Of a stretch of DNA of 64,000 nt, positions 1,323 to 36,255 are shown one piece after another. How positions within the stretch are numbered: the first letter of the stretch is position 1; each line of letters begins with the position of its first letter. The stretch covers positions 885,585-949,584 of the forward strand of contig CBFDEM010000021.1 of the NCBI GenBank assembly GCA_965603825.1, read 5' to 3'. A program made the translations under genes and the position numbers. Below the pieces are notes generated by a model. The model searched no databases and was not told the DNA's origin. It was given only the letters and a program-made list of their open reading frames with translations. The stretch comes from Blepharisma stoltei ATCC 30299. Its lineage: Eukaryota > Protista > Ciliophora.

Positions 1323-4300
1323 ATGGCATATTTATGAAGACTTCGTCAGAATTTTCAACCCATCATCTTACTATTTACTTTCTTTCAGCTGTCTGTTTCT
1401 TTAGAAATTATTCTTGCTTATGAAGACAATTATAATTTAAATTCCAGAGACTTAAATGTAACATCTCTTCTTGAGGTCACCCAATCACTAACTTCTCAAG
1501 TAGACTGGCACAATTGCAGAATCTCAAATTTGGCTAACTGCGTTGACTATTTCCCGAATTCATTAATTATCTTAGATTTATCTGAAAATTTGGATACCAG
1601 AAATGCAGTTTCCCATTTATGTAAAAGTCATATGATAATCCATTTTGTTTTACAAAGTGATTTTCGATTTCAAGACGACTTGACTTTTTCACTTGCATCT
1701 TCAAAAAATAAGCAAATAAATGCATTTTTGTCAGTTTTAGACTATTTAAATTGAACACAGGGAGTGGCAATTAAAAGTATTGAAAATCATAGTCTCAAAG
1801 AAGAATTAAAAGAATATTCTTCAAACATAGATTTTTTAACTGTTGAGTCACAATCAAACATAGAAGAATTAGTAAATAGAGTTGTTGTAAGACAAGGTGC
1901 TACTGTTTATTATATATTTACTAGCTCATTAGAGTCTTTAGAGCTGCTAAAATGATTTCAGAATGCAAAACTTTTAACTGCTGGTAATGGAATTATTTTG
2001 GATCAAGAAAGTGGGTATCAATGTAATATTAATGGAACTTTAATTGTTACTGAGTTTGGCCAAGAATTCGCAGCTTCTCCTGAGGAGTACTTGAAAAAAT
2101 CTATTATAAATGTGATTTCTTATATTTTAAGCCAAATATCTAACGAAACTGCTCAAGATATATTATCAGTTTTACAAAAATACCAAATTGAATATAAATT
2201 TTCTTTAGTCAATATCCAGAATGGAGCACGCGTCATTGTCGGATCAATTGTAAATAATATTATCTCAATATCAAATAATATGACTTTTCCTGGCAACTCA
2301 AATTCAATTCCAAAATCAACCAAAAAAATTTTAAATTTAAGCATTAATGCTGGGTCTACAAATCCGAATGCAGCTTCATCTACTAGCGGAGAAATCGGTT
2401 CTTGGGGCGCATACTTCGCAATGGACGAAATAAATGAAGGAAACACCTTTTTGCAGAATTTTCAGCTTCAATTTTTTAGTTTTGACTGTGGCGTTACAGT
2501 TTACGATTCACAATATGCTTATAATTGTTATAGCAAAAACATAAATAAATTAGGGCTAGGACAAATTTCACCATTTAGCTCAAGCAATGCAATAGGAGCT
2601 CTCCAGACTTTTAAAAAACTAAATGTGACGTTACCAGTAGTGGGCTGCTCAGTCACTGAGCCATCACTGAATTCTACAACAAGTTATCCTATGTTCACAA
2701 GGGTTTGGTTTACAGCGTCTTATGGATCCTCTTATCTTTCTGTCTTACTTAAAGCTATGGGATGGGAAAAAGTCTCAGTTTTGTATCAAAATAATTCATG
2801 AGGATTCTCTAAATTTTGGTATTTAAATCCAGCAATTGAAAGCCAAGGTTTAGAAATAGTAAACCCGGAAAATACTTGGTGAATCCCTGCAGGGCTTAAT
2901 AGAGAAAGCCTAAAAAACTACACAGATATTGCACAAGGCATTATTAATTCTCAAGCGAGATTACTAGTACTAAGTATAGAATATCCTATGTGTAATTATT
3001 TTTTTGAATTGCTTTATGATTTAGGCTTGAGAAAAGGCGATTTAATTACAATTGCAACTTATCTTGACACTCTCACAGTTATTGGGAATATCGATAATTA
3101 TAGGTATAAAAGACTTGAAGTTGGAATCCCGACGATGAGATTATCTTTGAGTACCTGGGTTGGTACAGTTGGCCAAGCAGCTAAAGCAGCTAAAGCAGAA
3201 GTCACAGCTATTCATAAGCAATCTCCTACTGTCTATACCTGCTCTTTTTATGACGGGACTTATCTTTTAGCTCATGCTTTAGATTATATGATAAACAGAG
3301 GCATAGATTATAAAGATCCTAATAAACTAGAATCAATTATCAGAATCCAGCAATTTATAGGGTGCACAGGAAGAATAGCCACAGACTCAGACAGTAATGA
3401 CAGAATTGTGGATTCCTGAGATATAGAAACTAATGAGATTGATAGTGAAGGAAATGTTACTACACAAGTCATTGGAACTTTTAAGCCATTTTCTTCACAT
3501 GTTTTTACGATATCTAATTCTTTTTTTTATCCTGATGGGACTACTATTAAGCCTAGTGATTTAAGAAATGAAAACAGTAAATGTCCGTTCCCAGAAAAAT
3601 TAGTTAAAACTTTTGCAAAGGGGAGGGCACTGCTATTTGGGATTTGTTTTTTTGTTGCAGTAGTTACTTTTGCTATCACACTATTTATATGGAAAAAATG
3701 ATGGAACATTACAAATGAGGACCTTAAGCAAAAAGAAGAAATTTCATTGCAAGATACAGTAGTAGCAATTTCTATAGTAATTGAATTTTTCCAATATTCT
3801 TCTATGGGGCCGAATTTTTCGATTTTAAGTCCTTTTATCGCAAATTTTTCTGGGGCGTTTTCATTGAATTTAGGAGATATTATAAAATTAGAAAATGGAG
3901 TGTTTTGGATATTAGTCGACATTGTTTTTGGAGGCATATTATTATGGGCAATTCTTTGTGCTGTAATTTTATTGAGACTTGATGAGAAATGGAATTTTTT
4001 ATCAGTCATAAAATTTTTATCGTGGCTTGCAGATTATCTTATGCCTATTTTAGGAAATTTGTGCTTTATTCCTTTTATTTCTATTTGTTTAGATATTTTC
4101 TTATGTGATCAATCCATCGGAGATAATTTTACAGACAGCTTTCTTGCTCGAGATTGCTATTATTTTTGCTGAAAAGATGAGCATTTAACTCATGCAATAT
4201 TATCATTTTTAGCATTATTTTTATATGTGCCCTTCGCTATTTTCTGTAGACCTCTTTGGCAAGAACTCCAAGGAATGCTTCATGTAAAAACAAGTCCTAC

Positions 4301-4733
4301 ATATTTGATGGTAAAAACCATTTTTCAAATAACCCTAATCGTTATGAATAAAACTATAAAAAGGTCTCAAGACATAACTCATGGGTGCTTATTTGTAACA
4401 GTTTTAATTGGTTATATTATTTTTACATTTAAATTCAAGCCTTACAACTACGCAAGATTCAGTTGGTGGCAAGGGTTAGTTTTAATAGGGGTTGCATGGC
4501 TAGCGTTTATTTCTACAATTGCGATAGGAATACAAAATTATTTTACTTCACTACTTGCAATACTTTTTCTTGGGTGGGTTATTATTATAATAGTAGGATT
4601 ATACAAACAAAAGAAAAAATACCCAAGCTTGTTATTCAGAAAAAGCGCAAAAGACACGTCTACATTGTTTAAGTTTGCTTTTACATTTGGAAAAAGTACA
4701 GGTATTTCAAAAGATAAAGTTGCTCCATATTAA
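1323..4733 (+). CDS. Receptor-like protein, copy 1: signal peptide, tandem Venus-flytrap (ANF-receptor/periplasmic-binding type 1) domains, ~9-TM domain, ~1136 aa
   Basis: ORF pieces 1530, 1764, 1998, 2988, 3747 and 4227 share one frame and are joined by TGA=Trp; ATG at 1323 precedes a hydrophobic leader. Motifs LNSTTSYPMFTRV, GWEKVSVLY, YDGTYLLAHAL and FIGCTGRI...DR are typical of ANF-receptor/class C GPCR ectodomains. Confidence 0.9.
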
Positions 4734-5117
4734 TATAAGATTGAATTCTGCTATTTAAGTTTTGCATATAAATTATTTTAAATTTATTTATAATTTAACT
4801 GAATTAATGATAAAATGAAACTTTTTCTTTTTAAATTTATCTCAAATACTAAAATTGATTGAAATAAAATCTTATTGCTTTGGCTAAATATATTTACTCA
4901 CAAATATCATCTTATTCCTCCTTAAGATTGTGAAAATGACTTTACCAGCAAAAAAGCTTTAATTAATATATTTATTTTTTAATCAATTTATTCGAGCTTG
5001 CCTTTACTTTTGGAACTCTGCATAACAAAGACTAGAGTATTATTAGTTAGAAGATTTGAAAAATTATAGCGAAATATTTTAATTGAAAATATTTCCTAGA
5101 AATATATTTAAAATTTA

Positions 5118-5420
5118 AGAGATGATATTAGTTAGCCTTGTTTGACAGATAATTTAATATTAGCTGAGAGCTGATTTTTGTGCAAGTTCTTACTATAATT
5201 GCACAGCTTTTTGCCTAAAAGCTCAAAAATTAAGTATCCAAGCTGATGTATCTACTGCATATTTCAAGCTTTCTTAAAACTATATCCATTCCATTTAAAA
5301 CCATTAGACAAAGAACGGCGTTTTTATACTCCATTATAGAGTTCAGCCAGATCTCGTTTGTCATTAAAGATTATTTTTTATTGCAGCAGTGATATAAAAA
5401 ATTATAAAATACGCTTTGAT
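5118..5420 (-). repeat. Inverted remnant of the 3' end and downstream flank of the Cys-rich gene family
   Basis: The reverse complement contains aagctgtgcaattatagtaagaacttgc...caaggctaactaatatcatctc, similar to 6250-6340. 5340-5415 is similar to the reverse complement of 6380-6478. Confidence 0.7.
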
Positions 5421-5444
5421 AAATGAATCTATTTAATTATTAAA

Positions 5445-6329: not shown

Positions 6330-6494
6330 TCTCATTTCTTAATATTTTATAAATTATAAATAAAAATATTTCATAAAACCACTTTAGATTTATTATCAAA
6401 ATGCATTTTATAATAATGTTTTAATTCACGCTGTAATAAAACAAGGTCTTTAATGACAAAGCAGCTCTGGCTGAGCTAATTACATTATTTAAAG

Positions 6495-6512
6495 TGATTA
6501 AGGTGTCTAAAC
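6495..6512 (+). repeat. Target-site duplication, left copy (18 bp)
   Basis: TGATTAAGGTGTCTAAAC is identical to 11725-11742; its first 5 nt overlap the tail repeat, so the boundary is ambiguous. Confidence 0.92.
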
Positions 6513-6525
6513 TTTTTTCATTTTT

Positions 6526-9500
6526 ATGAGTCAGCAGAAAAAGAAGATTGTGACACTCAAGGCTGCCCAAGAAGAAATTCAACATTTGGGACTTAGCGGG
6601 AGTGGAACATTTTTCGGATTCCTGGCTCCAAACGAAATTTTGCCTGAAATAGAAGAATCACAATACCTCGAGAACTCAATAAAGGTCTATTTTTCCAAAT
6701 ACAAAAACAGGGAAGACAAAGGTGAAAAAAGGAGCTCTATGTTGCACTCATACTGGCACTGGAAGTTGCGGCAAAACCTGGAGATATCCTGAAGTGCAGA
6801 CAGCTGCCGTCCGGAGATGCAATAGTCATCTTCACCAAGAGCGAGGCTAGAAAGCAACTGCTGCAGGAAGGAAGAATGATGATCCAGCTTTGAAGTCAAA
6901 AAGTAAATGTACCAGTTGGACCAGTCGGTAGAAACGGTGACATTAACTTTCTCAGGTACCTCATGCAAGTGACATTACCAATAGAAATCGGAATTGGAGA
7001 TGTCTTGGAAGCCTTGGAGAGCAGGTGCAGAGTAGTGGAGGTTGTGATAGACAACATAATGAGAGATGAGAATACATGATATGCAGTTCACTTCAACCCC
7101 AACTCGAGGTACAGGATTTATGGAGAGTTTGCGAAACTGGAAGATGCGATAGACCTCCCAGAGGAAATCGTAATAAAAGGTAGGAGAATCTTTATCAATC
7201 ATGCAGCGTCGCTGCTCTGTGGGATCTGTAAGCAGATAGGACATAACGATGAGGGCCACAAAAGGATGGAGATGCAAAGAGAAGAAAGAATACGAGTAGA
7301 TGGTATAAGGAGGAAAAAGAAGGAGGAAGAAAGGAGGGTGCGAGTGAAGGCTATAGGGGAGAATTTAGGATTAAGAATGAAGTTAGAAGACGATAAACAT
7401 AATAACTCTACATATGCTGGGCTGATTAAAGCTGAGGAAGCCAAAACAGAGGCAACAAAAGAGCAGATAGATGGGAGGACGAGTGGACTGGCAAAGAGAA
7501 CTCCGCAAGAAGCAGGACTAGTTGATCCACCAATGAAGCGAGCTAAAATCAGGAAGAATCGGACTATGGCGATCGCTCACCTGAATATACGGAGTAAAAC
7601 AGAAGAAGGAACAGATAGAGAAATTTCTGCAAGAGGTGGGGGTAGAATACTTGGAATAAGTGAGACACACTGCTCAGAAACAGATTTCCTACCAAAAATC
7701 AATGGATTCAACTGAAGCCACAACCCAGGAACAGAAAGAAGTGCGGGTGCTGGAATCTTATATAGGAAAGGACTAGCGATTGAAGAAACCAAAGAATTTA
7801 CTCAAGGAAGGATAGCAGGGATAGTGATTGAGAGTCAGGTAATAATAGAAGCTTACTCACCTAAGGAAGGGGACGAAAAGGCTCTGGATGCTTTCTATGA
7901 GGGTTTAAACGAAGCTTGTGAATGGGGGAGAGCTAGGGGAAAATATCTACTACTATTTGGAGATTTCAATGCTCATATTAGAGGGTGATGATCAGACCAA
8001 ACCAACGGAAACGGACATCTTTTTAAGCAACTATGTGACGAATGAGGGTTGGAGATACTGCCGATGAACAAACCGACTCATTTACACTCAAGTGGATCCA
8101 CATTCTGCCTTGAATACTGCGCGATTGACAGACACATATTAGGCAAAGTGATAAGCTATGAGGACATTCAAAATAACCCGATCAAATCGGATCATTTACC
8201 AGTACTCCTTAAAATATGAGAAGGATGGTGAGAGACGAACAGACAAACAAAGAAAATGCTGAGACTCGATAGGCTCCAAAGCTCCACATACCTCAAGCTA
8301 TATCAAGAAGACGTCAAGCGAGATTTGCAGGACCTGGACATGAATGGAGATGTTGGACAGATCTACAGGGAGATAAACAAGATCGTTCTTGGATCGGCGG
8401 AAAGAGTATTAGGGGTCAAAGATGGGCAAAGAAGTGTGCTGGGAAGAGATTCCTTGTTGCTGCTTCGTGAAGCACGGAGATTTAGGTGAAAAGCGTTAAA
8501 GGCGCTGAAGAAGGATGCTGGAAAGTATGATGAGCTAATGAGAAAGCACAGGCTAAAAATGAAAGAATTTAAAAGAGAAAGGAGCAGGATAGAGGCCCTT
8601 ACAAAAAGGGAGCAGGAAATCGAAAATGCAATCATTGGTGAAAAAGACATGTGAGTCCTTTACAACAGGATCAAAAGACTGAAAAGAACCGAAATAATAA
8701 AGCTTAGTGGCAAAGAGGAAGAAGAGATGGTAGCATGGTGACAGGCCCAATACTCGGATTTGGTGGTTGAGACTGATCTCCCTAACGCAGACCCGATATT
8801 GCCTACCTGGGAAGAGGTGAATTGAGCCATATCTACGCTGGGAAATAAGAAAGCAACAGGCCCTGATGGAGTACCGGCAGAGCTAATTAAAGAAGGCGAG
8901 GAAATCATGAAGGAAATATATTGGAGACTGATCCGAAGGATTTGAAAAGAAAGATACTTACCGGTAGAAATGAAGGAAGCACTAGTGGTTCTGATCCCAA
9001 AAAAGAAAGGTACTAAAACACCGGAGGATTACAGGCCAATAACGCTACTTAACACGGTCTACAAAATATTAGACAAAATAATTGCGACGAGATTGGCGCA
9101 GGAAATAAATACGAAAATGATTATGCACACATCGCAAGCAGGATTCATCACTAATAGGGCGACATCTGACCAGATACATAAATTGGGAACAATAATTGAG
9201 TACTGTCTACTGAAGAAGAGGAAAATAAGATGCGCATTTTTGGACATTAGCAAAGCATTTGGCTCAATAAGACACAACAATTTATACGAGACTATGAAGC
9301 AAAGAGGGATCTCCACAGACAATATACGAATGCTGATAGCAATGTATAAAGAGGCAGAAAGCAGGATAATTATGGACGAACATCTAACCAGATCTATCAG
9401 TATAAAAAAGGGTGTGAGACAAGGTGGAAGTTCATCTCCAGTATGCTTTAATTTTATACCAAACGAGCTAGCATGGAAAATAGACGAAATGAACATAGGG

Positions 9501-11665
9501 GTTACAGTAGATGAAGACCGGCAATTAAAACTGGGGTTGCTACTCTATGCGGATGATATAGTGCTACTCGCACATAAAAAGAAAGAATTACAGGCACTCT
9601 GCGACATATGCGATCAATGAGCAAAGTACTACTCGCTAAAGATTAACCAAAGTAAGTCGGTCGTGGTAGATTACTCGAGTAGAGCCGGAGATCTGCATAT
9701 AGGAGTAAACGGACAGAGGCTAAAGCAAGAGAAACAGTTTAAATACTTGGGCAAAATAATAGCAAGGGGAAAACATAACAAAGCAGACTCGAAGAAAACC
9801 ACGGAGAAGACCAAAGCAGCATGTAGATCGACTAAAGCGATGCTGACAATGATGAAAAACATAAAGGCAACAAAAAAGGCCATCATAGCAAGAGCGTGTA
9901 TAGATCCAACAGCATTGTACGCGAAGGAATGTAGCCAGCAAAACTGAGATGATATTGCGATGAAGGTAGCTGAAAATGAGAGGATGGGAGTAGCAAGAGC
10001 TATACTGGTAGCACCAAGAGGTACAGCGAGAGAAACAGCAGGGCTAGACCTTGGATGAATCAGTTTAAAGAACCAAATGAGAATGCGCACCCTGTTCTTT
10101 AGAAAGAAAATGCTGGAAGCAGAGGACCAGCTCACAAAGGTGATAATGAAAATCAATAAGCACAATGCACTGGCCTGAGAAAAACGATGCAAAGTTTATA
10201 TGAATAATTTGGGAATTGAGGAATATGACAACAAGCAGATTAAGAGGACAGAAGCGAAACAGTGAAAACGAATACTAGAAGAAGCTGTAAAGAGATGTAA
10301 CCTAAAGGAAATGGTGCAGAGACTGGAAGCCGAGACGTACAAAACAACGGACCTCTACAGATGGACGTTTGAGGGAGCCAAGGCTACATACACTCCAGCG
10401 TATGTTCGGCTCAACTTCAATATGCACATGGCAATTGGTGCTATGCACAGTATGAGAGCAGGGTTTAACAGCAGCAATAGCTGTGCACACAAGAGACATC
10501 TGACCAAGACGCATTGTGTAATAATTGCAAGGTGGTGGAAACTGAGAAGCACATGCTAGTGCAATGCCCAATGTATGTGACGAAGAGAACAGAGCTAAAA
10601 AATAGCATAAATAAAGTGTTACAGGATGCACTGATAATGGATGTATCATTGTATGATGACCCGTTGCAAGGTCTGGTAATGCAGGTTGCACAGGTACGAG
10701 AAAAGCTAGGAAAAGGTGTACACATAATAGACAAAAATGAGGCACGGGTTAAGCAAGCATTGAGCGCCAGTGAGAATCATCTAGAGTGGCAAATGCTAGA
10801 ACATGAAGATTTGCCTATTCAAGGCATGCAACTACAAGGCATGCCATATTGTGGGGCGATTATGGACGGGGATACAAATGCAACAGCTGAGATGCTAGTG
10901 CAAGACACGCACATAATTGACAAAAAAGAGGCACTTAGCGACAGTGGCACACAAGGGAATCATATGGAGTGACGGATGCCACAACATGAAGATTTTCTTA
11001 TGCAGGACATGCAATTACAAGACATGCCATATTGTGGGGCGATTATGGACGAAAATATTGAAGAAATTATGGCGTCTGCAGGTACTGATGCTACACTTGG
11101 AACACAACTACAGCCGGTGCAAGCACATGCTGCACATGATATACAGGTGGCACATGATATGCAAGATGCACATGCACACACAAATGCAGCACCTGAAATG
11201 TTAATACAAGATGCACACATATCTGATGAGGAAGAGGCACGGATGAAGCAAGCATTGAATGACAGCGCTATACAAGGGAATCGTCTAGAATGGCCGATGC
11301 TACAACAGGAAGATTTGCTCATACAGGACATGCAACTACAGGACATGCCATATTATGGAGCGCCGATGAGTGAAAATACACAAGCTACGCATGAAGTTGA
11401 AATGCAGGACGGTTGGCAGTGAAACTATAACAAAATAGAAGCAATGGATTTACTGATGTGTACGTGAAGATATGAAATGATAATAGACAACTGAAGTAGG
11501 GAAGGGAAGCATGAAGTGGCGTTGGAGGTGGATCGACTAGTTAAGAAATTCCATGCAGCGACACTGAAGGAAAGAGCGGTGAAGCATCTTGAAGAATCAG
11601 GAAGGAAAGATGAAGTGGAATTAAGACAGAGAAAGATTACCTACTGATTTAAAAATGATCCATAA
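6526..11665 (+). CDS. LINE polyprotein (gag-like region with Zn knuckle, APE, RT, CCHC finger, repeat insert) with two apparent -1 frameshifts
   Basis: With TGA=W one frame is open from 6597 to TAG 10557-10559 and includes track ORFs 7266, 8256, 8970, 9663 and 10311. The ATG at 6526 is in another frame (shift by ~6730). CNNCKVVETEKHMLVQCP continues in a third frame from ~10514 to TAA 11663-11665. Confidence 0.8.
10720..11375 (+). repeat. Three imperfect ~50-codon repeats inside the LINE C-terminus
   Basis: HI(I/S)D..EA....AL....N(H/R)(L/M)EW.M...ED..(I/M)Q.MQLQ.MPY.GA.M occurs at about 10720-10870, 10905-11050 and 11210-11370. Confidence 0.9.
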
Positions 11666-11697
11666 GGATCGTTGGGCGGTTAATTGCCGCTAGATAA

Positions 11698-20500: not shown

Positions 20501-20953
20501 GTGGCTTTAATAGTGATGAATAAGACAGTAAAAAGAGCACAAGATATTACTCATGGGGTGTTGTTTATCGCTGTGATGATTATTTACATTGTTTTTCTTT
20601 ATAAATTCAAGCCTTATAATTACTCAAGGTTCAATTTATGGCAAAATTTGAGTTTAATTGGGGTAGTCTGGCTTGCAATATTATCCACAGTTGCATTGGG
20701 TACAAAAGGAAACTCTGTGATCTTGACTATATTTTTATTTGTTGGATGGCTTATTATTGGCCTTATCGGGCTGTATATACAAAGAAAAAGGTGCCCAAGT
20801 TTACTTTTTAGAAAGAAAGGCCATGATACAGCAAGCCTGTTTAAATTTGCTTTTACTTTTGGTAAGAGTTCACGAAAAGCTTTGAATCGGATAGCTCCTT
20901 CTAGTGGCTCACTAGAATCTCAAAACAAAAATAAAAAACTTAATAGCAGATAA
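17516..20953 (+). CDS. Receptor-like protein, copy 2 (tandem VFT, ~9 TM), ~1145 aa
   Basis: ATG at 17516 is in frame with ORFs 18038, 19376, 19928, 20126 and 20372 when TGA=W; same motifs as copy 1. Confidence 0.9.
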
Positions 20954-21024: not shown

Positions 21025-24000
21025 ATGCTAAGAATGTGGTTTATTTTACTTCGAAGACTTTTTTTAAAGCTCTTTTTAGTCGCATTGCTCCTAAACCTTT
21101 CGCTTTCTCTAGAAATTATTTTAATCCAAAGTAATGAAAATTTCAAAGGCAATTTGTGAAATGAAGAGACTTTGATTAATTATTTAGTAGATGCCAGTCC
21201 TCAAATAGACTGACATATTTGCCCATACATTTCAGCAGCTAAATGTATAGAATTTTATCAAGACTCCTACATTTTAATTGATCTATCGCAAGACCTAACC
21301 ACCCAAGCTGAAATATCTGAGCTTTGTAGGGAATATAAAAAAGTTCATCTAGTAGCTCAAGACGAGTTTAAATACCACAATGACTTGACTTTTTCTGTCA
21401 TTTCGTCTAAAAAAGCCAAATTTAGTGCATTTTTTACTTTACTGAACTTTTATAACTGAAGTAAAGGGACAATTTTTACAAATTGGTACAACCAGGAAAT
21501 GTTTTTGAATTTCACCGAAAGCTTTAATTTATTAACAATTGAATCAATGATTGATATGGAAAATTTAATCATGAGAGTTGTGCCACCGTTAGGATCAACT
21601 CTTTATTATATTTTTACTCAGAATAATGAATCGATTTCTATACAAACTTATTTAATAGAGGCAAATCTATTAACAGAAGGGAATGGAATTATTTTAAATC
21701 AGAAAAGCGGCTACAGGTGTAAAATAGAAGGAGCCTTGATAGTAACTGATATGGGTAACGAGTACGCTGACTCTGAAGAAAAATACCTGGGCTCTTCTAT
21801 TTTAACTTTTCTCAAGGAAATCGAAAACTCTGAAAATTTTCTCGATGTGGTAAATATATTAGAAAAAGAACATAATTCTCATTATGGGCAAAATAAATTT
21901 TCTATTATCAATATACAAGGTGGGGAAAGGGTTATAATTGGATCGATTATTGAAGGAGTGGCTTTTATGCCAAATAACCCAATTTTCCCAGGAAATACTA
22001 CGTCTATTCCAAAATCACACAAAAAAATCCTAGATATCAGCATTGAAGCAGGATCTACAAACCCGAATTATTCACCCTCAACTGTCGGCCCTCTTGCAGC
22101 TAGAGGTTCATATTTAGCTGTCAGCTATATAAATGCGGGTACCTCAGGAATATTATCAAATTTTCAAATTAATATGTTTAATTATGACTGTGGTGCTAGT
22201 GTTTATAATGCAACATTTTCCAAAGCTTGTTTTCAAAAGGATTTTGATAGTTTTGGCTTAGCTCACATAGTATCATATGCATCCTCAATGGCTCTCGGCA
22301 CTGTAAAACTATTCAAGTCACTAAATTGGAATTTTCCTCTTTTAGGTATTAATTCAGATCCTTCATTTAATTCCTCCACATTATATCCATGGTATCAAAG
22401 GGTTTGGCCTTCATCATCATTTACACTTCCCTTGATCCCTGTCTTATTACGATCTCTTGGCTGACAAAAAGCAGCAATTCTATACCAAAACGACAGCTGA
22501 GGCCAAAATGGCTACTATTTTTTAAACCTAGGCGCAAATACCCATAATTTGATTTTAGTGAATCCTGACAATACCAGAGCAATTCCTATAGGACTTGACA
22601 GAAATACCATAAAAAATCATTCAGATATCCTACAAGGCGTAATAGACTCAAATGCAAGGCTTGTTATTCTTCTAGTCCAAGTCCCATTAGTACAGTATGT
22701 AATAGAAGCTTTTTATGATTTAGGCCTAAGGAGAGGCGATATACTTATCTTTGTTTCTGTCCCCGATATTCTGTCCAATATTTTGACGACTGATGACTAC
22801 CTTTATAAAAGGCTGGAAATCGGAGTCCCTATGATGACTTTTTTTGGGCAGCAATGAGTCGGAAAACTTGGCGAGGGCGCATATTCAAAAATTTTGCAAT
22901 TATATAATAACACTGCGCCCAGTTCTTTTGCGTGCCATTATTTTGATATAATTTATTTAATAGGCCATGCTCTTGATTTTATGATTAACCGTGGGCAAGA
23001 TTATACAAATCCTTATAAACTGGAAAGTGTAATAAGAAACACACAGTTTATAGGCTGTTCTGGAAGCGTGATTATAGAAAAAGGCAGCAATGACAGATTT
23101 GTGTCAGTTTTAAGCGTCCAAGCAGATAAATTTGATATAAATGGAAATGTTGTCAAGTATTTTATAGGAGAATTAAAGCCTTATAGCACTCAGATGTTAC
23201 AAATCTCTACCCCACTTATTTATCCTGATGGGACTACCATAAAACCTGCAGATTTACGAAACCAAAACACTGACTGCCCTTTTCCTGATAGCGAGATAAA
23301 AACCTTTGTGAAAGGAAAAATTTTGGTCTTTTGCATTTGTTTTGCTATTACTCTTATATCAATTATAATTACTTTTATTATATGAAAAAGGTGATGGAAA
23401 TTTTCAATTGAGGAGCTCAAAGAAAAACAAGAAATTTCTTTCCAAGACGCCGTAGTCGCTGCGACGATCGCTATCGAATTTTTCCAATTTGCTTCGATGG
23501 GGCCTAATATGTCATATTTAAGCTCGGCTTTAGGAAATTTCAGCAACTCTTTAACTTTGGAAATGACAAATATCATAAAACTCAGGAACGGGATGTTTTG
23601 GATCATTGTTGATGCAGTTTATGGATTGATAGTTCTATGACTTTCTATGTGTGGAGTAATTCTTCTTCGCTTGGATGAAAAATATTTGCATTTTACGCTG
23701 TTCAGGTTTATAGCTTGGCTTGCTGACTATATGATGCCGATTTTAGGAAATTTGTGCTTCATTCCGTTTATTTCGATTTGTCTTGATATTTTTGTATGTG
23801 ATCAATCTATTGGAGATAATTTCACTGATAGTTTTTTATCGTATGACTGCTATTATTTTTGCTGAAAAGGAGAACATTTAGCATATGCAATTTTGTCATT
23901 TTTCGCTTTATTGTGCTATGAGCCACTTGCAGTGTTCTGCAGGCCTCTTTGGCAGGAGTTCCAATCTTTACTACATGTAAAAGCAGCCCCTCTGTTTTTG

Positions 24001-24456
24001 ATGGTAAAAACAATTATTCAGGTGGCTTTAATAGTGATGAATAAGACAGTAAAAAGAGCCCAAGATATTACTCATGGAGCTTTATTTGTTTTGGTAATGA
24101 TCATTTATATTGCTTTTCTATTTAAGTTCAAGCCTTATAACTATTCAAGATTCAATTTATGACAAAACTTAAGCTTAATCGGAGTGGTGTGACTAGCAAT
24201 ATTGTCAACAATCGCACTAGGCGCTAAGGGAAACTCTGCAATATTAACAGTATTATTATGTGCTGGATGGGCCATGATTGGAATATCCGGGCTTTATATT
24301 CAAAAGAAGAAATGCCCAAGCTTACTTTTCAGAAAGAAAGGCAATGACACAACAAATCTATTTAAATTTGCCTTTACCTTTGGAAGAAGTTCACGCAAAG
24401 CTTTGACTAGAATAGCGCCTTCAAGTGCCTCATCAGAGCTTCAGCACAATAAATAA
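21025..24456 (+). CDS. Receptor-like protein, copy 3 (tandem VFT, ~9 TM), ~1143 aa
   Basis: ATG at 21025 (alternative 21034) gives the leader MLRMWFILLRRLFLKLFLVALLLNLSLS, in frame with ORFs 21499-24456 when TGA=W; closest to copy 2. Confidence 0.9.
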
Positions 24457-24529
24457 ATTATAAATAGTAAAATAATGATATATTTTTATTATCTGAAGAA
24501 AAATGAGACAATTAATTATTTATAATAAG

Positions 24530-27500
24530 CTAGTCAGCACTTTTGATCTCAGTCGGCATTATTTTTTTCGAAAATGCGCCTTTTCCAAAAGTAAAGGCAA
24601 ACTTAAATAAAGTAGATGTATCTTTGCCCCTCTTTCTAAATAATAAGCTAGGATATTTTTTCTTTTGAACATATAATCCAATAGCAACAATGATAAGCCA
24701 CCCACCTATTAAAACGACAAGCAAAGGAACAAAATTATCTTTTATCCCAATAGCAATTGTAGATAACAAAGCCAGCCACACAACTCCAATCAAGCTTAAT
24801 TCTTCCCATCAGCTAAATCTTGGATAATTATATGGCTTAAATTTAAATGTAAAAATAATATAAATAATCATCACAATGACAAATAAAACTCCGTGTACAA
24901 TGCTTTGAGATCTTTTTATTGTTTTATTCATCACAATTAAAGTAATCTGAAGAACACTTTTTACCATCAAATATAGTGGAGTTGTTTTCACGTGAAGCAT
25001 GTGCTGTAATTCTTGCCAAAGAGGCCTGCAAAATATTGCTAACGGGACATATAAAAGTAATGCAAGAAATGAACCTATTGCATATCCTAAATGCTCGTTT
25101 TTCCAACAAAAATAATAGCAATCCCTTGCAAGAAAGCTATCAGTAAAATTATCTCCAATTGACTGGTCACATAAGAAAATATCAAGGCAAATTGAAATAA
25201 ACGGAATAAAGCACAAATTCCCTAAAATAGGCATAAGATAGTCAGCAAGCCATGACAAAAACCTAAAAACAGAAAAAACCCTCCACTTCTCGTCCAACCT
25301 TAGCAAAACAACAGCACAAAGAAGTGCCCATACCCCGACCCCTCCAAAAACAATATCTACAATAATCCAAAAAGTCCCTTTATCGAAATTCAAAATATCC
25401 CATAGACTTAATGATAAAGCATCAGAAATTTTTGCAATAGCAGAGCTCATAATATCGAAGTCAGGCCCCATAGCAGTATATTGGAAAAACTCTATAATAA
25501 TAGAAGCCGCTACTATTGTGTCCTCTATAGAAATTTCTTCTTTTTGTTTTAGCTCTTCAATTGAGATATTTCATCATTTTTTCCATATTATCACTGTAAT
25601 ACCAAGAGAAATTGCTGCAACTGCAAAGCAAATTCCGAATAGCAGCCCTCTTCCTTTATCAAAAGTTTTTATTTCTTTATCAGGGAATGGGCATTTGCTG
25701 TTTTCATTCCTTAAATCGCTTGGCTTATTGGTAGTTCCATCAGGATAAACAATAGGATTTGTGATACTTAAAATTTGCGAAGAAAACGGCTTTAATTTAC
25801 CTATAAATTTTGTGGTAATTTTACTAGATAAATCGACCTCACTGACCTCAATATCTCACCCATCAACAATCCTGTCATTCGTCCCTTTTTCTATTGTCAC
25901 CCTTCCTGTGCATCCTTGAAACTGCTGATTCCTTATGACTGCTTCTAGCTTTTTAACGTCAGTGTAATCCTGCCCTCTATTTATCATATAGTCCAAAGCA
26001 TGAGCCAAAAGATAAACTCCATCATAATAAGGGCAAGTAAAGGCATTTGTAGGCTCTTTATAGATTTCCATGACCTTTGCTTTGGCTTTTCCCCCAATTT
26101 CCCCTACCCAATTCTGTTGTATCATTCTAAACATCGGAACTCCAACTTCTAGTCTTTTATATAGAAAAGTGTCATTAGTCCCAATAATGGTCAGCATATC
26201 CAAATAAGTCGCGAAAATTAGCATATCGCCTTTTCTCATGCCTAAGTCATATAAAATTTCTAGCACAAAATTGCACATAGGAGACTGTACCGTTACTATC
26301 AATAATCTTGCTTGGGAATCTATGATTTTTTGAAAAACATTGGTGTAGTTTTTTATAGTGGTTCTGTCAAGATTTGCAGGAATGTACCAGGTGCTTTCTG
26401 GGTTCATTATTTCTAAGCCTTGACTTGCGATAGCTGGGTTTAAATACCAAGACCTTGAAATTGCCCATAAATCGTTTTGGTATAAAATCGCGATTTTTTT
26501 CCATCCCATAACTTTGATTAAAACTGAGAGTAATGATGAAGCATAAGCTGTGGAAAAACCGACTCGGGTGTACATAGGATAGGTTTGGGTCACATTTAAA
26601 GAAGCATCAGAATTGGTGCACCCCACAACAGGAAAAGACACATTAAGGGATTTAAAAGTCTGCAATGCCCCAACAGCTATACTTGAGCCATATGATGAAA
26701 TATGACCTAAGCCGAATTTATCAATGTCTTTTAAAAAGCAGCTATAAGCAAATTTCGCGTTATAGACGGTAGCTCCACAGTCATAATTAAAAAACGCAAG
26801 CTGGAAATTCGATAAAATGCTGCGGCCTTCATTTATTTCGTCTCTTGATATCCATGCACCTCTGGCGCCGATTACTCCACTTGTGGCTGGCAGTGCATTC
26901 GGGTTTGTGGGCCCAGCATTTATGCTTAAATTCAAAATTTTTTTGGTCGATTTTGGAATTGTGCTTGACTTTTCAGGAAAAGTCAAATTATTTAAAATAA
27001 AAACGTTGTTATTTATAATCTCTCCAACAATGATTCTTTTGCCATTCTGGATGTTGACTAAAGAAAATTTGTTTTTGCCAGGATCATTTTTAAGCACTGT
27101 GAGGAGATCTTCAGTAGTTTCCTTTGAAATATGGCTTAAAATGTAAGAAATGACATTTATAATAGAATTTTTAAAATATTCTTCAGGAGAACCAACAAAT
27201 TCTTGCCCATAGTCAGTAATAATTAAGGCTCCATCTGTATGGCACTGATGCCCACTTTCTTGGTTTAGAATGATTCCATTACCGACTGATAATAGTTTTG
27301 CTTGTTTTAAGTGCTTTTGGATCTCAAGTGACTCTGAGGTATGAGAAAATACACAATACACTGTAGCTCCTTCTCGAAAAACGACTTTATTTACAAGTTC
27401 TTCAATGCTTGATTTTTCCTCAACTGCTAAAAACTTAAATTTACTTGAAAAATTTTCAACATTTCCTTTAAAATCATAATTCTCTTGATTATAAAACGCA

Positions 27501-27943
27501 ATCCCTTGCGTCCAATCCAAATAGCCTAGAGCTGCTAAAAACGCATTTATTTGGTCAGTTTTTGATGATGCTAGGGAAAAAGTCCAGTCGTCAGAAAATT
27601 TCAAACTGCTTTCTAGGACTAGGTGAATTATGAAGCTACTGCTGCATAATTGGGAAATTTTGTTTTGGGTGTCTAAATTGCTGGATAAATCAAGGAGAAT
27701 TAATGAGCCAGGAAAATTGTCTATACACTCAGCAATGACTGAAATTTCGCATCTGTGCCAGTCAATTGAGGAATTTAGCGATTGAGTCACTTCAAGAATA
27801 GAGGTTTCATTTCACTTGCCAGAATTTGAATAATTACTATCTGTATAGGCAACTATAATTTCTAATGAAATTGATAATTGTGATATTGCAAATAATAACA
27901 GAAGTTTTCTGAAATAACGCTGAAGAACGCCTGAAGCTGTCAT
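24530..27943 (-). CDS. Receptor-like protein, copy 4 (tandem VFT, ~9 TM), ~1137 aa
   Basis: ATG at 27943 (MTASGVLQRYFRKLLLLFAISQLSIS) is in frame with ORFs 25856-27790, 24809-25471 and 24530-24793. Confidence 0.9.
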
Positions 27944-28920: not shown

Positions 28921-31900
28921 TTAAGTAATTTTTTGTTCTTTTGGGAATATTTTTCCCTTTGAAAATCCAACACTTTTTCCAAAAGAAAAAGCAAATTTAA
29001 ACAAAGTTGATGTATCTTTGGTACTTTTTCTAAATAGCAGACTGGGATATTTTTTCTTTTGAATATAGAGTCCAACAATGGCAATAATAAACCAGCCAAA
29101 AATCAAAACTACTAAAAGCGGAATGAAATCATCCTGGATCCCTATAGCAATCGTAGATATAAAAGCTAGCCATTCAACACCAATTAGGCTTAAACCTTGC
29201 CATCAGCTAAATCTTGGATAATTGTAGGGCTTAAATTTAAAAGTAAATATAATATAAACCAGCAGGACTATTATAAACAAAACACTATGGGCTATTTCTT
29301 GAGATCGTTTTATAGTTTTATTCATCACAATTAATGAAATCTGAAAAATACTTTTTACCATCAAATATAAGGGAACGACTTTGACATGAAGCATTAGCTG
29401 CAATTCTTGCCAGAGCGGCCTACAAAATATAGCCAAAGGCACATATAAAATCAACGCCAAACAAGACAGTATTGCATATACCAGATGCTCATCTTTTCAG
29501 CAAAAATAGTGGCAATCTCTTGCAAGAAAGCTGTCTGTAAAATCGTCACCAACAGATTGATCACATAAATACACATCTAGGCAAATCGATATAAAAGGAA
29601 TAAAGCACAAATTCCCTAAAATCGGCATGAGATAGTCAGCAAGTCATGATAAAAATTTAAAAATAGAAATAAACTGCCATTTTTCATCAAGCCTTAACAA
29701 AACAACAGCACATAGAACAGCTCAGAGCCCAATCCCTCCAAAAACAATTTCCACAACCACCCAAAATACCCCATTTTCCATCTTTAAAATATCATCTAAA
29801 TTCAGTGACAAAGAATTAGCAAATTTCGAAACTATTGAAGAAAAAATTGAAGTTTCAGGCCCCATCGACGTATATTGGAAAAATTCAACGATTATTGATA
29901 TTCCCACGATTAAATCTGGGACTGAAATTTCTTCTTTTTTCTTCAGCTCGTCGACTGATATATTTCATCATTTTTTCCATATTAAAACAGTAATTCCAAA
30001 TGTAACCAAGGCAACCAAAAAGCAAATCCCAAAAAGCAGTCCTCTCCCTTTAGGAAAAGTCCTTATGTCCTTATCAGGGAATGGGCATTTATTATTTTCA
30101 TTTCTTAGGTCGCTAGGTTTAATAGTAGTTCCATCAGGATAAATGATGGGGTTTGTGATACTTAAAATTTGTGAGGAAAAAGGCTTTAATTTCCCGATAA
30201 ACTGAGTTATAACATTTCCTGCGTCGTCGAACTGGTTTATTTCGATGTCTCAGACGTCAACAATTCTATCATTAGTCCCTTTCTCAATTGTCACTTTTCC
30301 TGTGCAGCCTTGAAATTGCTGGTTTCTAATAGCTGCTTCTAGCTTATAAGGGTCAGTGTAATCTTGCCCTCTATTTATCATATAATCCAAAGCATGAGCT
30401 ATTATATATATTCCATCATAATAAGGACAAGTATAGGAATTTGTAGGCTCTTTATACATAGATGTGATTTTTTCTTTAATATTCGCTCCTTTTTTGCCTA
30501 CTCAATTTTGTGGAAGCATCCTAAAAGTAGGGATTCCGACTGCAATCCTTTTTCATGCATAAATATCGTCCTTTCCAGCAGCAGTTAACTGATCCAAATA
30601 AGTCGCAAAAAAAAATAAATCACCTTTTCTAATGCCAAGATCATAAAAAAACTCCATTAAAAAGTTATACATAGGATACTGCATAGTCAAAACCAACAGC
30701 CTAGCTTGGGAGTCAACAATCCTTTGGATCGTGCTTGCATAATTTTTTAAGCCTTCTCTGTCAAGGCCTGCAGGAATATACCAGGTGCTTTCTGGGTTCA
30801 CGATTTCTAGTCCTTGTTTATCTATAGCTGGATTTAAATATCAAGACCTTCCGATCGCCCAAGAATCATTTTGATATAAAATCGCAATTTTTTTATATCC
30901 CATAACTTTGATCAAAACTGAAAGCAATGAATAAGCATACGCAATGGAGTAGCCCACCCTTGTAAACATAGGAAAATTTGCAGTGGAATTCAATGAAGCG
31001 TCTGTATTGGAGCATCCAACTATTGGGAATGTTACATTGAGCAGCTTAAATGTCTGCATTGCTCCAATAGCTACATTGGAAGCATATGATGACACATGGC
31101 CAAAGCCGAATTTATCAATGTCGTTGAGAAAACAGCTATAAGCAAATTTTGCATTATAAACGGTAGCACCACAGTCGTAGCTAAATAGCTCTATATGAAA
31201 ATTAGGCAAAATAGTGTGGCCATCATTTATTTCATCTTTTGCAAAATAAGTCCCTCTAGCTGCAATTACACCCCCTGTTGCTGGCAATGCATAAGGATTT
31301 GTAGGGCCTGCGTTTATGCTCAAATTCAAAATTTTTTTGGTAGATTTTGGAATAGTATTTGAGGGCCCGGGAAAAGTCAGATTATTTGTTATGAGGATAT
31401 TATTATTTACAATTGACCCAACGACTACTCTGTTTCCGTTCTGAATATTAACCAAAGAAAACTTGTTTTTGTTAGGACTATTTCGGAAGCCCTGCATAAG
31501 GATTTGAATATCTCAGGCGGTTTCATTTGAAGTTTGGTTTATAATGAAAGAAACCGCACTTATGATGGAGTCTTTAAAATATTCGTCAGAAGAAATCGCA
31601 AATTCGTGTGCGAAGTCAGTGATTATTAAAGCGCCATCAGTTTCACACTGATAGCTGCTTTCTTGATCAAGAATAATCCCATTGCCAGCTGTTAGAAGTT
31701 TGGATTTTTTTAAGTTTTTTTGGATTTCTAATGACTCTTCTCAGTTTGTAAAGATACAATATACAGTTGCGCCTTCTCGAAAAGCGACTTTATTGATAAG
31801 CCCTTCAATACTTGATTTTTCTTCAACAGCCAAAAAATTAAAGTCATATGAAAAATCTTTTATGGCTTCTTTTACATCATAATTTGCTTTATTGTTAAAA

Positions 31901-32331
31901 GCGATCCCTTGGGTCCAATTTAGGGATCTCAGTACAGACAATACAGCATTTATCTGCTGAGTTTTGGAAGATCCAAGCGCAAAAGTTCACTTATTTTCAA
32001 ATTTCACGTTGTTTTGGAGAACTAAATGAATCAAAATCCGACTTTGGCATAAATGGGAAATTGAGCTTTGTGTCGCTATATCATTTGATAAATCTACAAG
32101 AATTCTCGCAGTGGGAAAATAGTCAGTGCAGCGAGGAAGATTTGAGATGCTGCATTTGTGCCAGTCCACAGAGCCACTTAACGATTGAGTTATGCTTAGA
32201 ATAAAGTTTTCATCTGGATAAAGGCTCTCATCATAGGCAATTATAACTTCTAATGGAGAGGATAAATGCAAAAAAGTGAATAATGTCAAGATTTTCCAAA
32301 AAACGTGTGATCGGATATGTGGAATTATCAT
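28921..32331 (-). CDS. Receptor-like protein, copy 5 (tandem VFT, ~9 TM), ~1136 aa
   Basis: Track ORFs from 31987-32331 down to 28921-29106 form one frame with TGA=W; closest to copy 4. Confidence 0.9.
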
Positions 32332-32859
32332 ATTGGTTTAATTCTTAAAAATAATTGCAAATAAAGATTTTAAATATTAAAGCAAAAATAACTTTTAAAG
32401 ATGCAATTTTGGCTTTAGATTATTGTGGCTCTTATTTTAGGTAATTGTATGTAGGACAATAAAGTATGAGAAAATTTGAGCAAGGAAAGGATTTATACTT
32501 ATTATCATTATATACTTTGTAGCTTGATTATTTTTAATTTGCAATAATATATGAATCAGATAAATATGTATCATCGCGTCTTCATGGTTATGGCATGCTT
32601 ATCATTAGCTTTCTCTTCAACTAGCAAATTTCTTTATCATTTAATGAAGAAATTTTAAATAAACTTTACATTTTTAAGTCTTAAGATCGATTTATTGTAA
32701 AAACCATACAATTATTGGGGAGATATTTCCTAATTATTGTTTAGTATATCATTAACAAATAATAAATGCACCTTTTTGAATTAAAGATATTTAAAAATAT
32801 AGCCATTAGTATTTAAAGATATCTATATAGGCTAAATATATTAGGATACTTTATATTAC

Positions 32860-35800
32860 TTAATCATCTATCAAATAAATACTGCTTTTTAGGCTAAAGT
32901 TAAACGCGAAACTAAATAAAGCAGACTCATTTCTTGGCTTCTTTTTATAAAGCAAGCTTGGGTATTTTTTCTTTTGTATCAAAATGCCAACCAAGCCAAT
33001 CATAGCCCACCCTACAATCAAAATTGTTATATAAACTATCGAGTTCCCACCAGCTGATAATAAAATAACTGATAATAAGGCTAACCATATCACTACAATC
33101 AAACTAAGTGCTTGCCAGAAGTTAAATCTCCCATAATTAAAAGCATTGTATTTTAAAATATACCACACATATGCAGTCATTATAACTATAAAAACAATTC
33201 CATGCGATATATCGCTAGCTCTCTTAAGTGTTTTATTTAGAGTAATTAGCATCATTTGCACGATAGACTTAACCATAAGATAAATTGGCAATGCTTTTAC
33301 GTGGAGGTTTAGCTGCAGCTCTTGCCAAACCGGTCTAAAAAAGACAGCTAGCGGCTGGTATAAAAGCAAAGCTACAATAGAAAGGAGCGCGTATATTAGA
33401 TGTTCGTCTTTTCAGCAGAAATAATAGCAGTCTTTCGCAAGAAAACTGTCGGTGAAGTCGTCTCCTATAGACTGATCACACTGAAACATTTCAAGACAAA
33501 TTGATATAAAAGGAATAAAGCATAAATTGCCCAAAATTGGTATTAAATATTCTGATAATATACCTAAGTTCCTGAATATCCAAATATTATCATATATTTC
33601 ATGGAGCCTCAGCAGAACCACAGTACAGAGAATGACTCATAGCCCAATAGAGCCTAATACAATATCTGCAATTATCCAAAAAAATCCATTTTTAAACTCT
33701 ATAAAATCATTCAAGTCAAAAGATATTGCTTGGCTGAGCTGAGATAATAGAGAGATTAAAGCCTGGAAATCAGGTCCCATAGAAGCAAATTGAAAAGCTT
33801 CAATAACGATAGTGGCAGCTACTATGAAATCTTGCAAAGAAACTTCTTGGCGCTCCACAAGATCATTTATTCTCTCATTCCACCATTTTTTCCTTATCAA
33901 AAATGTGATTATCCCAGCAATTAAGGCCATAGTAAAGCATATCCCGAAAAGCAAGATTCTTCCTTTTGCGAAGGTCTGGATTTTGTTTTCTGGAAATGGG
34001 CATTTACCGTCAGTCACTCTTAAATCAGGAGGCTTAATAGTTGTACCGTCTGGATAAATCAATGGTTTTTCAAAATAAAGCAGCTGTGTGCTAAATGGCT
34101 TTAAAGTTCCAACTAAAGAAATATTTGCAGTCCCTTGTGCTTGGTTCACGTTGGCAACTTCAAATTGGTATAAATCAAAAATCCTATCATTACTATTCTG
34201 TTCTATTTGAACATATCCAGTGCAGCTTGCAAATCTTTGAACCCTGAGCGCTTGCATTAGTTTATAAGGATTCGTATAATCTTGTCCTCTGTTTATCATG
34301 AAATCAAGGGCATTTGCTACAAGATAAGCACCGTCATAGTAATTGCACCCAAAAGTATTTGGTGCTATATTATACATCGCCCAAATTCGTTTTAAAGCAT
34401 CTTGGCCTATATCTCCCAGTCAGCTTGGTGTTATGAGGCGAATCATGGAGTGTCCGATTTCCAATCTTTTTTGCAAAGAAGTATCATTAATTGAAATATA
34501 TGTTAAGGGATCAGGAGTCACTGTAAAAATAATTATATCCCCTTTTCTCATTCCTAAATCGTAAAAGGTTTCTAATGCATAGTTGCACATTGGGCATTGA
34601 AAAACCATAATAAAAAGCCTTGCCTGAGAATCAATAACCCCTTGGAATGCATCTGTATGATTTTTTATGGAGTTTCTGTCTAAGCTAGGAGGGATCGCCC
34701 TCAGCTTTTCTGAATTGATAATTTCCAAGCCTACGCTTTTAGCAGTATTTTGTGTAATGGAATAACTAGCTATCCCCCATGAGCTGTTTTCATATAAAAT
34801 TGCTGCCTTTTTTCACCCAAGTGCTTTGACGAGCACTATATTTTCGATATAAGTCACTGAAGAGATAGTTCTGACATACATAGGATAATTTTGGGAGGAT
34901 TTTAGGCTTATATCACCATTGGTGCTTCCAATGCAAGGGAGACTTATGTTTAGTTGTGCAAAAGTTTTCATTGTGCCTATCGCCATTCCAGATCCATATG
35001 AATTCAGATGTGCCAAGCCTAATTTATCAATGTCGTGGCTGAAGCAAGATTTTGCAAAGGCTGCATTGAATATAGTGACCCCACAGTCGAAGTTAAATAG
35101 CTCTGTATGAAAATTTGGCAAAATATCGTTACCTTCGTTGATTCTTTTCAAGCATGCGTAAGCTCCCATTGATCCTAATTTTTGTGTCATACTTGGTTGG
35201 GCGCCTGGGTTTGTTGTTCCAGCGTTGATACTTAAATGCAAAACTTTTTTAGCTGACTTTGGGGTAGAATATGCATTGCCTGGAAATGTAATATTATTAA
35301 AAATAATGACTCCATCATGAGTAATGGATCCCACAATTTTTCTTTTGCCTTTTTGAATATTAACAATCGAAAAGTTACGCTTATTATTAGGAGTTGACAT
35401 GCTTGAGTCAAGTAGAATCCTGATTTCATCATACGTTCCTCTTGATGTAGTATTTGATATGAAACCAATAGTATTTATAATAGAATGTTGAACATATTCT
35501 TCAAATGATAAGTCGTTCTCATAGCCCATCTCAGTAATAATTAAAGCGCCTTCAAGCTCACATCCATAGCCACTTTCTTGGTTCAATATAATTCCATTAC
35601 CAGCTATCAAAAGTTTTGCACTCTGCAACGATTTTTGTAAAAAAAGCGACTCTGAAGGCTCCAAAAGTACATAATAAAGCGTCGCACCCAATCTTGAGAC
35701 CTCTCTGTTGACTAAATCATCAAAACTTGTCATTGTTTCTACAGATAAAATTTTAAACTCAGCTGAAAAACTAAGAAAATGTTTTTTGGCTTCCAAATAT

Positions 35801-36255
35801 TTTTGATTAATAAAAGCCACTCCTTGTGTTCAGTTAAAGTAGCCCAGCAGTGAAAAAAGCGCACCCTGTTGCTCATTCAGTGAAGATGAAATTGAATAAG
35901 ATTGCTGAATTGAATATTTAGAAAATAATTGATATGACAAGTGAATTAAGCGGTTATCAAGGCAAAGTTGGGAAATTGCATATTGATTTCCATAATCAGT
36001 TGATAAATCAAGGAGAATGACAGCATTTGGGAATTCTTCTAAACAGTCCTTAACCTCAGAGTAATAGCATGTGTGCCAATCTACGTCAGTGCTAGCTTTA
36101 TTTGACAGAGAGAATTCTGATAAACTATTATTTTTTTCAGGAGTATCACCTCTATTATCAGGGTAAACAATTATCACTTCCAGACTGCTTGATAAAATAA
36201 ATAAGCTCCAAAAAAAAAGGGACTTGCTCTGATGATAAAAGTTAATTTCGATCAT
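32860..36255 (-). CDS. Receptor-like protein, copy 6 (tandem VFT, ~9 TM; most divergent), ~1131 aa
   Basis: ORFs 35830-36255, 34813-35820, 34420-34728, 33637-34377, 33412-33621 and 32860-33369 are joined by TGA=W. Motifs YPMYVRT, YDGAYLVANAL, FASCTGYV...NDR. Confidence 0.9.

Follow-up and report, generated by a model that had tools for sequence, protein, structure and literature searches.

Venus flytrap domains are known from several receptor architectures. In class C of the G-protein-coupled receptors (GPCRs), which includes mGluR, T1R, CaSR and GABA-B, an extracellular flytrap of the ANF_receptor type stands before a multi-helix membrane domain. The ionotropic glutamate receptors (iGluRs) likewise have an ANF_receptor-type domain, and place a ligand domain of the periplasmic-binding-protein type directly on an ion-conducting one. 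Flytraps have also been recombined with non-GPCR membrane attachments, as in the natriuretic-peptide receptor guanylyl cyclases, the Venus kinase receptors and the glycosylphosphatidylinositol (GPI)-anchored EhVFT of Entamoeba (PMC3703292, PMC12965686). A different group of membrane proteins, the fungal Pkd2/Flc family (Pfam PF06011; Pkd2, Trp663 and Trp1322 of S. pombe, Flc1-3 of S. cerevisiae), combines a signal peptide, an extracellular domain, a nine-helix domain of about 370-400 amino acids (aa) and a cytoplasmic tail. Here we describe six genes, R1 to R6, that lie close to one chromosome end of the ciliate Blepharisma stoltei ATCC 30299, in an AT-rich window (the whole stretch of DNA analysed, 64,000 nucleotides, G000:C21:885585-949584). 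Their products carry a tandem pair of flytraps on a nine-helix membrane domain, so that known modules are found in an undescribed combination. On balance we think that R1-R6 are functional members of a cell-surface receptor family that has expanded in Blepharisma, a family that is most likely chemosensory and may gate cations.

The six genes are single uninterrupted open reading frames (ORFs), for which spliced models are unnecessary, and the ATG codons of R1 and R6 are the exact outer bounds of the region 1323-36255. With TAA and TAG as the sole stops, this region contains six ORFs of 1134-1158 codons, and the proteins, 1131-1145 aa in length, are 47-75% identical in pairwise comparisons. The standard and bacterial codes were rejected for the region, as ORF calling with either splits the genes into short pieces; the genes are intact only when UGA is read as Trp. 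The window itself backs the UGA=Trp reading: 38 of the 52 in-frame TGA codons of R1-R6 have TGG at the same alignment column in a paralog. The same reading applies to the published B. stoltei somatic genome, which comprises 64 contigs and has 8-bp telomere repeats (bioRxiv 10.1101/2021.12.14.471607). In our window an 8-bp repeat, TGTTAGGG, with occasional variants, fills about 2.65 kb (61350-64000), and the window terminus falls within it. This repeat is that of heterotrich telomeres; it begins 25-60 kb from the receptor cluster.

The original prediction, made from the letters of the window, had spoken of six intact paralogs of about 1140 aa, each with a degenerate N-terminal flytrap, a canonical ANF_receptor-type second flytrap and about nine hydrophobic segments. 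Each part of this description is borne out by the results that follow, and the motifs that it quoted are all present in the alignment: FSLVNIQNG.R..VG...FPG, CPFP, EFFQ..SMGP, MPILGNLCFIPFISICLD.F.CDQSIGDNFTDSFL..DCYYFCWK.EH, RPLWQELQ..LHVK, KPYNY.RF and YPSLLFRK...LFKFAFTFG. When the window was searched with a profile of the membrane domain, exactly R1-R6 were matched, with no seventh ORF.

The second flytrap is readily recognized. In R1 the Pfam ANF_receptor model (PF01094; cut-off 25.4 bits) matches aa 364-691 over model positions 7-338 of 353 (E 1.1e-26, 94 bits), and R5 matches it at E 9e-23. A second-flytrap profile of 34 sequences, compared with the sequences of solved structures, finds mGluR7 as its best match (E 4.9e-16), and further matches are to mGluR8, 6 and 4, to T1R3, T1R1 and T1R2a, to GABA-B1 and CaSR, and to the plant receptor GLR3.4; the matches to mGluR7/8/6/4, T1R3, GABA-B1 and CaSR span E 5e-16 to 1e-10. 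The family motif gSsvAiG aligns on GSSVSI of mGluR7, and its central Ser is kept in all six paralogs. In the mGluRs this serine region of lobe 1 contacts the ligand carboxylate, and the second flytrap thus keeps the lobe-1 serine motif at the GSS ligand-contact region. What of the N-terminal block? The N-terminal third of R1, searched alone, matches PF01094 at aa 93-225 with E 1e-6 and 28.5 bits, which exceeds the cut-off. In an hhalign comparison drawn from an alignment of 145 full-length family members, the N-terminal block aligns with the second flytrap over 221 columns, and the two have in common a C-terminal ending, ...VG......FPG/YPDGTT. Because this comparison reaches 97.9% probability and E 4.9e-13, the reading of a tandem flytrap pair with a degenerate first copy is correct.

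Peripla_BP_6 is matched as well, though less strongly (E 1e-9 at best), which raises the question of whether the flytraps capture amino acids or other nutrients in the manner of bacterial LivK-type binding proteins, with the nine-helix domain moving or reporting what has been bound. Metagenome pipelines do label relatives of these proteins 'ABC-type branched-chain amino acid transport substrate-binding protein', and PF06011 includes the yeast 'flavin carrier' (Flc) proteins (PMC9600462), for which a flavin-carrier role was once proposed. Such a nutrient transceptor or transporter is nonetheless improbable. No transporter fold was recovered, the LeuT/APC rows of a Foldseek search being noise at TM-scores of 0.23 or below, and a set of over 110 diverged, tandemly arrayed copies is typical of sensory repertoires, not of transporters.

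A linker of about 20 aa with one invariant Cys, that of the CPFP motif, joins the flytraps to the membrane domain, and a Pfam search of the proteins found no NCD3G (PF07562) match. Hydropathy indicates eight or nine hydrophobic segments in the membrane half of R1-R6. The AlphaFold2 model (mad7a17c5b46e), built on A1, an alignment of 93 family members, has nine long helices followed by a short tail helix, with a mean predicted local-distance score (pLDDT) of 94.7 and a predicted template-modelling score (pTM) of 0.91; a single-sequence run was useless (pLDDT 45). Between helices 4 and 5 there is a Cys loop, C..(16)..C...CW...H, that is structured and Cys-rich in the model. Five residues are invariant, namely C5 in the CPFP linker, C179, C196 and C200 in the loop, and D62, the Asp that opens helix 2. 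Nearly so are Q75 (the Gln of EFFQ, in helix 2), H205 (the His past CW) and the PYNY.R motif of a cytoplasmic loop after helix 7. Beyond the last helix there is a short basic C-terminal tail of about 37 aa with a conserved amphipathic helix. Because the flytraps are outside and the predicted helices number nine, the Cys loop would be outside and the basic tail inside, and the modelled topology of the R1-R6 proteins is N-out, C-in. The domain has many relatives: a phmmer search with R1 aa 750-1136 returned 577 cluster representatives at E <= 1e-3, mostly about 1100-1240 aa in length.

Does the membrane half belong to one of the classes on which flytraps are known? No match to 7tm_3 (PF00003) at E <= 10, and no consistent match to a cyclase, a kinase or any other Pfam family, was found in pieces, in full-length proteins or in the 93 family members, and the proteins match neither the Lig_chan (PF00060) pore domain nor an S1/S2 core. 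Six-frame scans of the same genome show that 7tm_3 matches about three other loci and Lig_chan about six, none of them at the R1-R6 genes. Since both models match elsewhere in this genome by the same method, their failure to match here is meaningful. The original prediction that the membrane half is neither that of a class C GPCR nor that of an iGluR, and that no cyclase or kinase is present, stands; the 7tm_3 match that it had itself named as the telling contrary result was not found. Unlike the class C GPCRs, then, the family has two tandem flytraps, nine helices instead of seven, neither 7tm_3 nor NCD3G, and no fold match to a solved GPCR. It differs from the iGluRs in lacking the clamshell of S1 and S2 that is interrupted by the pore, and from the single-pass flytrap receptors and EhVFT in that the flytraps sit on nine helices, with no cyclase, kinase or GPI anchor. 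The loci that are matched by 7tm_3 or Lig_chan include G000:C57:710934-711596, C3:327093-327845 and C34:173942-174703; C5:823902-824633, C18:1037627-1037956 and others. Conventional partners of flytraps, of the 7tm_3 and Lig_chan types, are thus present in the B. stoltei genome in small numbers.

Searches against solved structures were no more revealing. Among the sequences of solved structures no match to the membrane profile came up at E <= 10. With the model as query, Foldseek reached an E of 0.26 at best in the PDB, with TM-scores of 0.23 or less, its GPCR rows being noise as were the transporter rows. In a wide search with VIA-align the best Z was 7.1 (Flycatcher1, Mrp subunits and spectrin), which is inside the stated noise range for helical proteins. 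On the fold searches we rejected as fold relatives the class C GPCRs, the iGluRs, canonical six-helix TRP/PKD2 channels, OSCA/TMEM63-type proteins, otopetrin and TTYH. Weak Pfam rows to Na_Ca_ex, S_4TM, Xan_ur_permease and 8xMP, which differ between paralogs, were also rejected.

Where, then, does the nine-helix domain come from? The closest demonstrable relative is the membrane domain of a protist family in which a beta-helix/PMP ectodomain and DUF7630 precede the nine helices. This family, which we call F2, is represented in B. stoltei by proteins of more than 1200 aa (G000:C39:599832-612787, C35:512869-534580 and C30:75542-89275; L007-L016), by a Stylonychia 'transmembrane protein' and by many metagenomic members. 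Its ectodomain, made of beta-helix/Chlam_PMP repeats and a 45-aa Cys-rich DUF7630, is wholly different from a flytrap pair, and identity between the membrane domains is only about 11-16%. The two families nevertheless have in common the juxtamembrane C..CP, the helix-2 Gln, the C...CW...H loop and (K/Q)PYN..LN, and the spacing of hydrophobic peaks in F2 mirrors that of the flytrap family. The profile of the flytrap-family membrane domain (A1) aligns with that of F2 (A3) by hhalign with 94.5-94.7% probability and E 6-8e-8; the score is 65, and reversed and 20 column-shuffled controls score 22 or less. The aligned core is helices 4-8, with the common motifs F.C...L..D...CW...H and (K/Q)PYN..R.N, and under relaxed settings it extends collinearly from the juxtamembrane C..CP through the tail.

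F2 in turn points to PF06011. Its members show collinear sub-threshold matches to this model, which reach E <= 0.01 in 10 of the 35 members of alignment A3 (best 3e-7), all at or under the gathering score of 28.5 bits; the sole other Pfam match was to one family, in a single member. A genome scan with PF06011 picks out two B. stoltei families, F2 and a Cys-rich family. The latter forms a cluster of proteins with Cys-rich ectodomains at G000:C43:500223-543497 (L001-L003, L005 and L006), with a further locus at C33:1608-5252 (L004); at the best C43 locus the membrane domain scores 31.7 bits on PF06011, above the gathering cut-off, and hhalign gives a weak link of 54-62% between this family and F2. 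The predicted fold points in the same direction. Clusters of the ESM Atlas match the A1 model across 288-307 residues, at TM-scores (by query) of 0.57-0.60. Of the members of one such cluster, 72% have Ephrin_rec_like and 11% have the Pfam TRP family PF06011; the other clusters have LRR or DUF7630. A language-model search for look-alikes, which we treat as a lead only, pointed to the same set. The general layout agrees as well. According to AlphaFold, S. pombe Pkd2 consists of a signal peptide, an extracellular domain, a 405-aa membrane domain of nine helices and a cytoplasmic tail (bioRxiv 10.1101/2022.08.11.503631), and the flytrap family matches this, with an N-terminal leader, an extracellular domain, the confidently modelled nine helices and a cytoplasmic C-terminus. 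On this evidence the membrane domain would be a divergent offshoot of a protist superfamily with nine helices, PF06011 probably being the nearest relative that has a name.

How large is the family, and how has it evolved? Searched with the A1 profile, the 41.5-Mb B. stoltei genome shows full-length copies of the membrane domain that number at least 110, a lower bound from 299 first-look candidates, of which 110 were scored. Many copies stand in tandem arrays, and the contig of the window has more than 20. The fungal Pkd2/Flc proteins number 3-4, in contrast to more than 100 here. Named relatives are found in Stentor coeruleus, and the remaining relatives are environmental or MMETSP sequences. 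In a FastTree analysis of 61 full-length proteins, midpoint-rooted and with a sampling biased to relatives of R1, the 55 copies from B. stoltei are grouped in a single clade with support 99, separate from Stentor. Within it the window genes fall in the subclades (R4,R5,(R1,P0002)), (R2,R3) and (R6,P0215). Identity, averaged over pairs, is 44% for the first flytrap, the fastest-evolving domain, 53% for the second and 65% for the membrane domain. The notion of variable ectodomains on a conserved membrane core therefore holds as a gradient, with every domain under purifying selection: Nei-Gojobori ratios of nonsynonymous to synonymous divergence (dN/dS) are 0.08-0.28 in every domain and about 0.1 in the membrane domain, at dS of 0.9 or more (near saturation). 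Given these values, the copies are old and constrained and are not pseudogenes.

One might think that a large family in tandem arrays near chromosome ends, expanded in one lineage and with ectodomains that evolve fastest, is a variable surface coat or a set of adhesins, in which the flytraps are scaffolds, the membrane domain is only an anchor, and no signal is sent. We consider this very improbable. The membrane domain is the most conserved part of the protein, in identity, in dN/dS and in its invariant polar and Cys residues; nine conserved helices are needless for a mere anchor; and the class-C ligand-site motifs are kept in the second flytrap.

There are indications that at least one of the genes is used. 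In four public runs of one study, 93-95% of the sampled words of R4 are present, and assembled contigs of these runs span R4 from about 24504-24630 to 27801-27943; coverage of R3 is patchy. The intergenic DNA that flanks R4 is left uncovered by the contigs of the four runs. Because the contigs are confined to the gene body, which is the pattern of transcript assemblies, transcription of R4 is likely. R3 and R4 are convergent, with stop codons 73 bp apart (window 24457-24529), and the contigs end about 26-100 nt short of or past the R4 stop, which suggests very short 3' untranslated regions.

In the mechanism that we infer for these receptors, the second flytrap would shut on a small ligand (an ion, an amino acid or an amino-acid derivative). 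Closure would be relayed to the helix bundle through the Cys of the linker and the three invariant ones of the helix 4-5 loop. The bundle would then switch state and, most likely, let cations (Ca2+) through, by analogy with reconstituted S. pombe Pkd2, which is reported to be Ca2+-permeable upon membrane stretch (PMC9727806). Chemical cues might thereby be coupled directly to membrane potential and ciliary beating. In ciliate chemoreception, receptors depolarise or hyperpolarise the cell (PMC8208649), and since chemical stimuli act in this way, a cation-flux output would suit a ciliate. A chemosensory repertoire fits because of the gene number, the tandem arrays and the faster divergence of the ectodomains. 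The family is a good candidate for the ciliate's chemical sensors.

A number of points weigh against our reading of R1-R6 as probable chemosensory and possibly cation-gating receptors. Chemosensing, with the gating of a cation flux as a possibility, is at most the likeliest function of the family; the state of the ligand pockets is judged from the residues that line up with known flytraps, and that the four public runs are RNA is a guess, so that R4 is likely, and no more, to be transcribed. Whole-domain dN/dS gives no signal of positive or diversifying selection, only of purifying selection. The membrane domain is similar to no solved structure. The Pkd2/Flc likeness that the original prediction had suggested survives by way of the intermediate F2 family and the predicted fold, and fails as direct membership of PF06011: in the flytrap family a single one of 93 membrane domains matches the model (E 0.009), below threshold, and none of the 17 loci of the genome-wide PF06011 scan belongs to the family. 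The link is thus transitive, mainly through helices 4-8, and hhalign of A1 against the C43 family gives 1% probability (the latter being a shallow six-sequence profile, too thin to speak for or against kinship). The flytrap family differs from the fungal proteins also in having a flytrap pair in place of an Ig-like or ML-like lipid-binding domain, and in the shortness of its tail.

Is there then any ion flux at all? Channel activity of PF06011 proteins is without confirmation from any solved structure, and the superfamily offers no solved relative of the domain. In a receptor that is not a channel, the nine-helix domain would relay a conformational change to cytosolic partners that dock on RPLWQELQ..LHVK, KPYNY.RF and YPSLLFRK...LFKFAFTFG; the cytoplasmic loops, which are strongly conserved, and the tail helix do resemble docking surfaces. 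We regard this as a serious possibility, though an unlikely one. The proteins show no known signalling domain or motif, and the conserved polar residues D62, Q75 and H205 inside the bundle, together with the precedent of Pkd2, fit permeation at least equally well.

A bolder form of the cation-gating reading, which we put forward tentatively and think rather doubtful, is that the family represents a new class of ionotropic chemoreceptors, in which a class-C-type flytrap directly gates a Pkd2/Flc-type nine-helix cation channel, with more than 100 members in heterotrichs wired to the membrane potential. One or more members could even be the receptor for gamone 2. Gamone 2 is a mating pheromone derived from tryptophan. 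The literature still terms the receptor for gamone 1 of Blepharisma 'putative'.

We found no literature description of this architecture, in which a Pkd2/Flc-like domain bears a flytrap, and searches aimed at gamone receptors and at TmcB yielded none either; the proteins go unmentioned in the genome paper, and public records name them only 'Receptor ligand binding region domain-containing protein'. To the flytraps of class C GPCRs, iGluRs, cyclases and kinases, and to the one on a GPI anchor, the present family adds a doubled flytrap on nine helices of the poorly understood Pkd2/Flc-like kind, and a single genome has at least 110 copies of it. Were these chemoreceptors, they would be molecular sensors for the chemical sensing of heterotrichs and candidate gamone receptors of Blepharisma. 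Should the membrane domain conduct ions, the flytrap would offer a ligand handle with which to test whether Pkd2/Flc-type proteins are channels. The nine-helix module may be seen as a general protist 'receptor chassis', joined to flytrap, beta-helix/PMP, DUF7630, Ephrin_rec_like and LRR ectodomains.

Table 1. The six receptor genes of the window and the parts of R1 (positions are those of the window; residues are those of the protein).
Feature	Window positions	Residues	Strand	Description and basis
R1	1323-4733		+	1136 aa; 8 in-frame TGA=Trp codons; TAA stop; letter-for-letter identical to database protein P0003
R1 hydrophobic leader		aa ~12-27	+	Hydropathy
R1 first flytrap, degenerate	1404-2327	aa 28-335	+	Follows the leader; ends FSLVNIQNG.R..VG...FPG; ANF_receptor and hhalign
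R1 second flytrap, canonical, class-C-type	2328-3557	aa 336-745	+	Pfam ANF_receptor; match to solved flytraps
R1 linker (CPFP), membrane domain of nine helices, conserved basic tail	3579-4688		+	A1 profile match; AlphaFold2 model
R1 helices		aa ~765-793, 809-828, 860-883, 894-924, 952-982, 992-1015, 1017-1037, 1044-1069, 1074-1099	+	AlphaFold2 model
R2	17516-20953		+	1145 aa; membrane domain 19751-20860
R3	21025-24456		+	1143 aa; 75% identity to R2 (tandem pair); membrane domain 23272-24381
R4	24530-27943		-	1137 aa; convergent with R3; membrane domain 24587-25696
R5	28921-32331		-	1136 aa; letter-for-letter identical to database protein P0001; 69% identity to R4; membrane domain 28981-30090
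R6	32860-36255		-	1131 aa; 47-50% identity, more divergent than the other five; membrane domain 32896-34005

Two minor observations concern the surroundings of the genes. Database records place the proteins of this contig on two contigs, the longer of which is 1,230,287 bp, while telomere repeat closes the window at C21:949,584; the longer contig could represent a separate assembly of this region. Between R1 and R2, at window 6597-11665 on the + strand, there is a pair of long ORFs (1320 and 394 codons with UGA=Trp), GC-richer at about 41% and with strong positive AT and GC skew.

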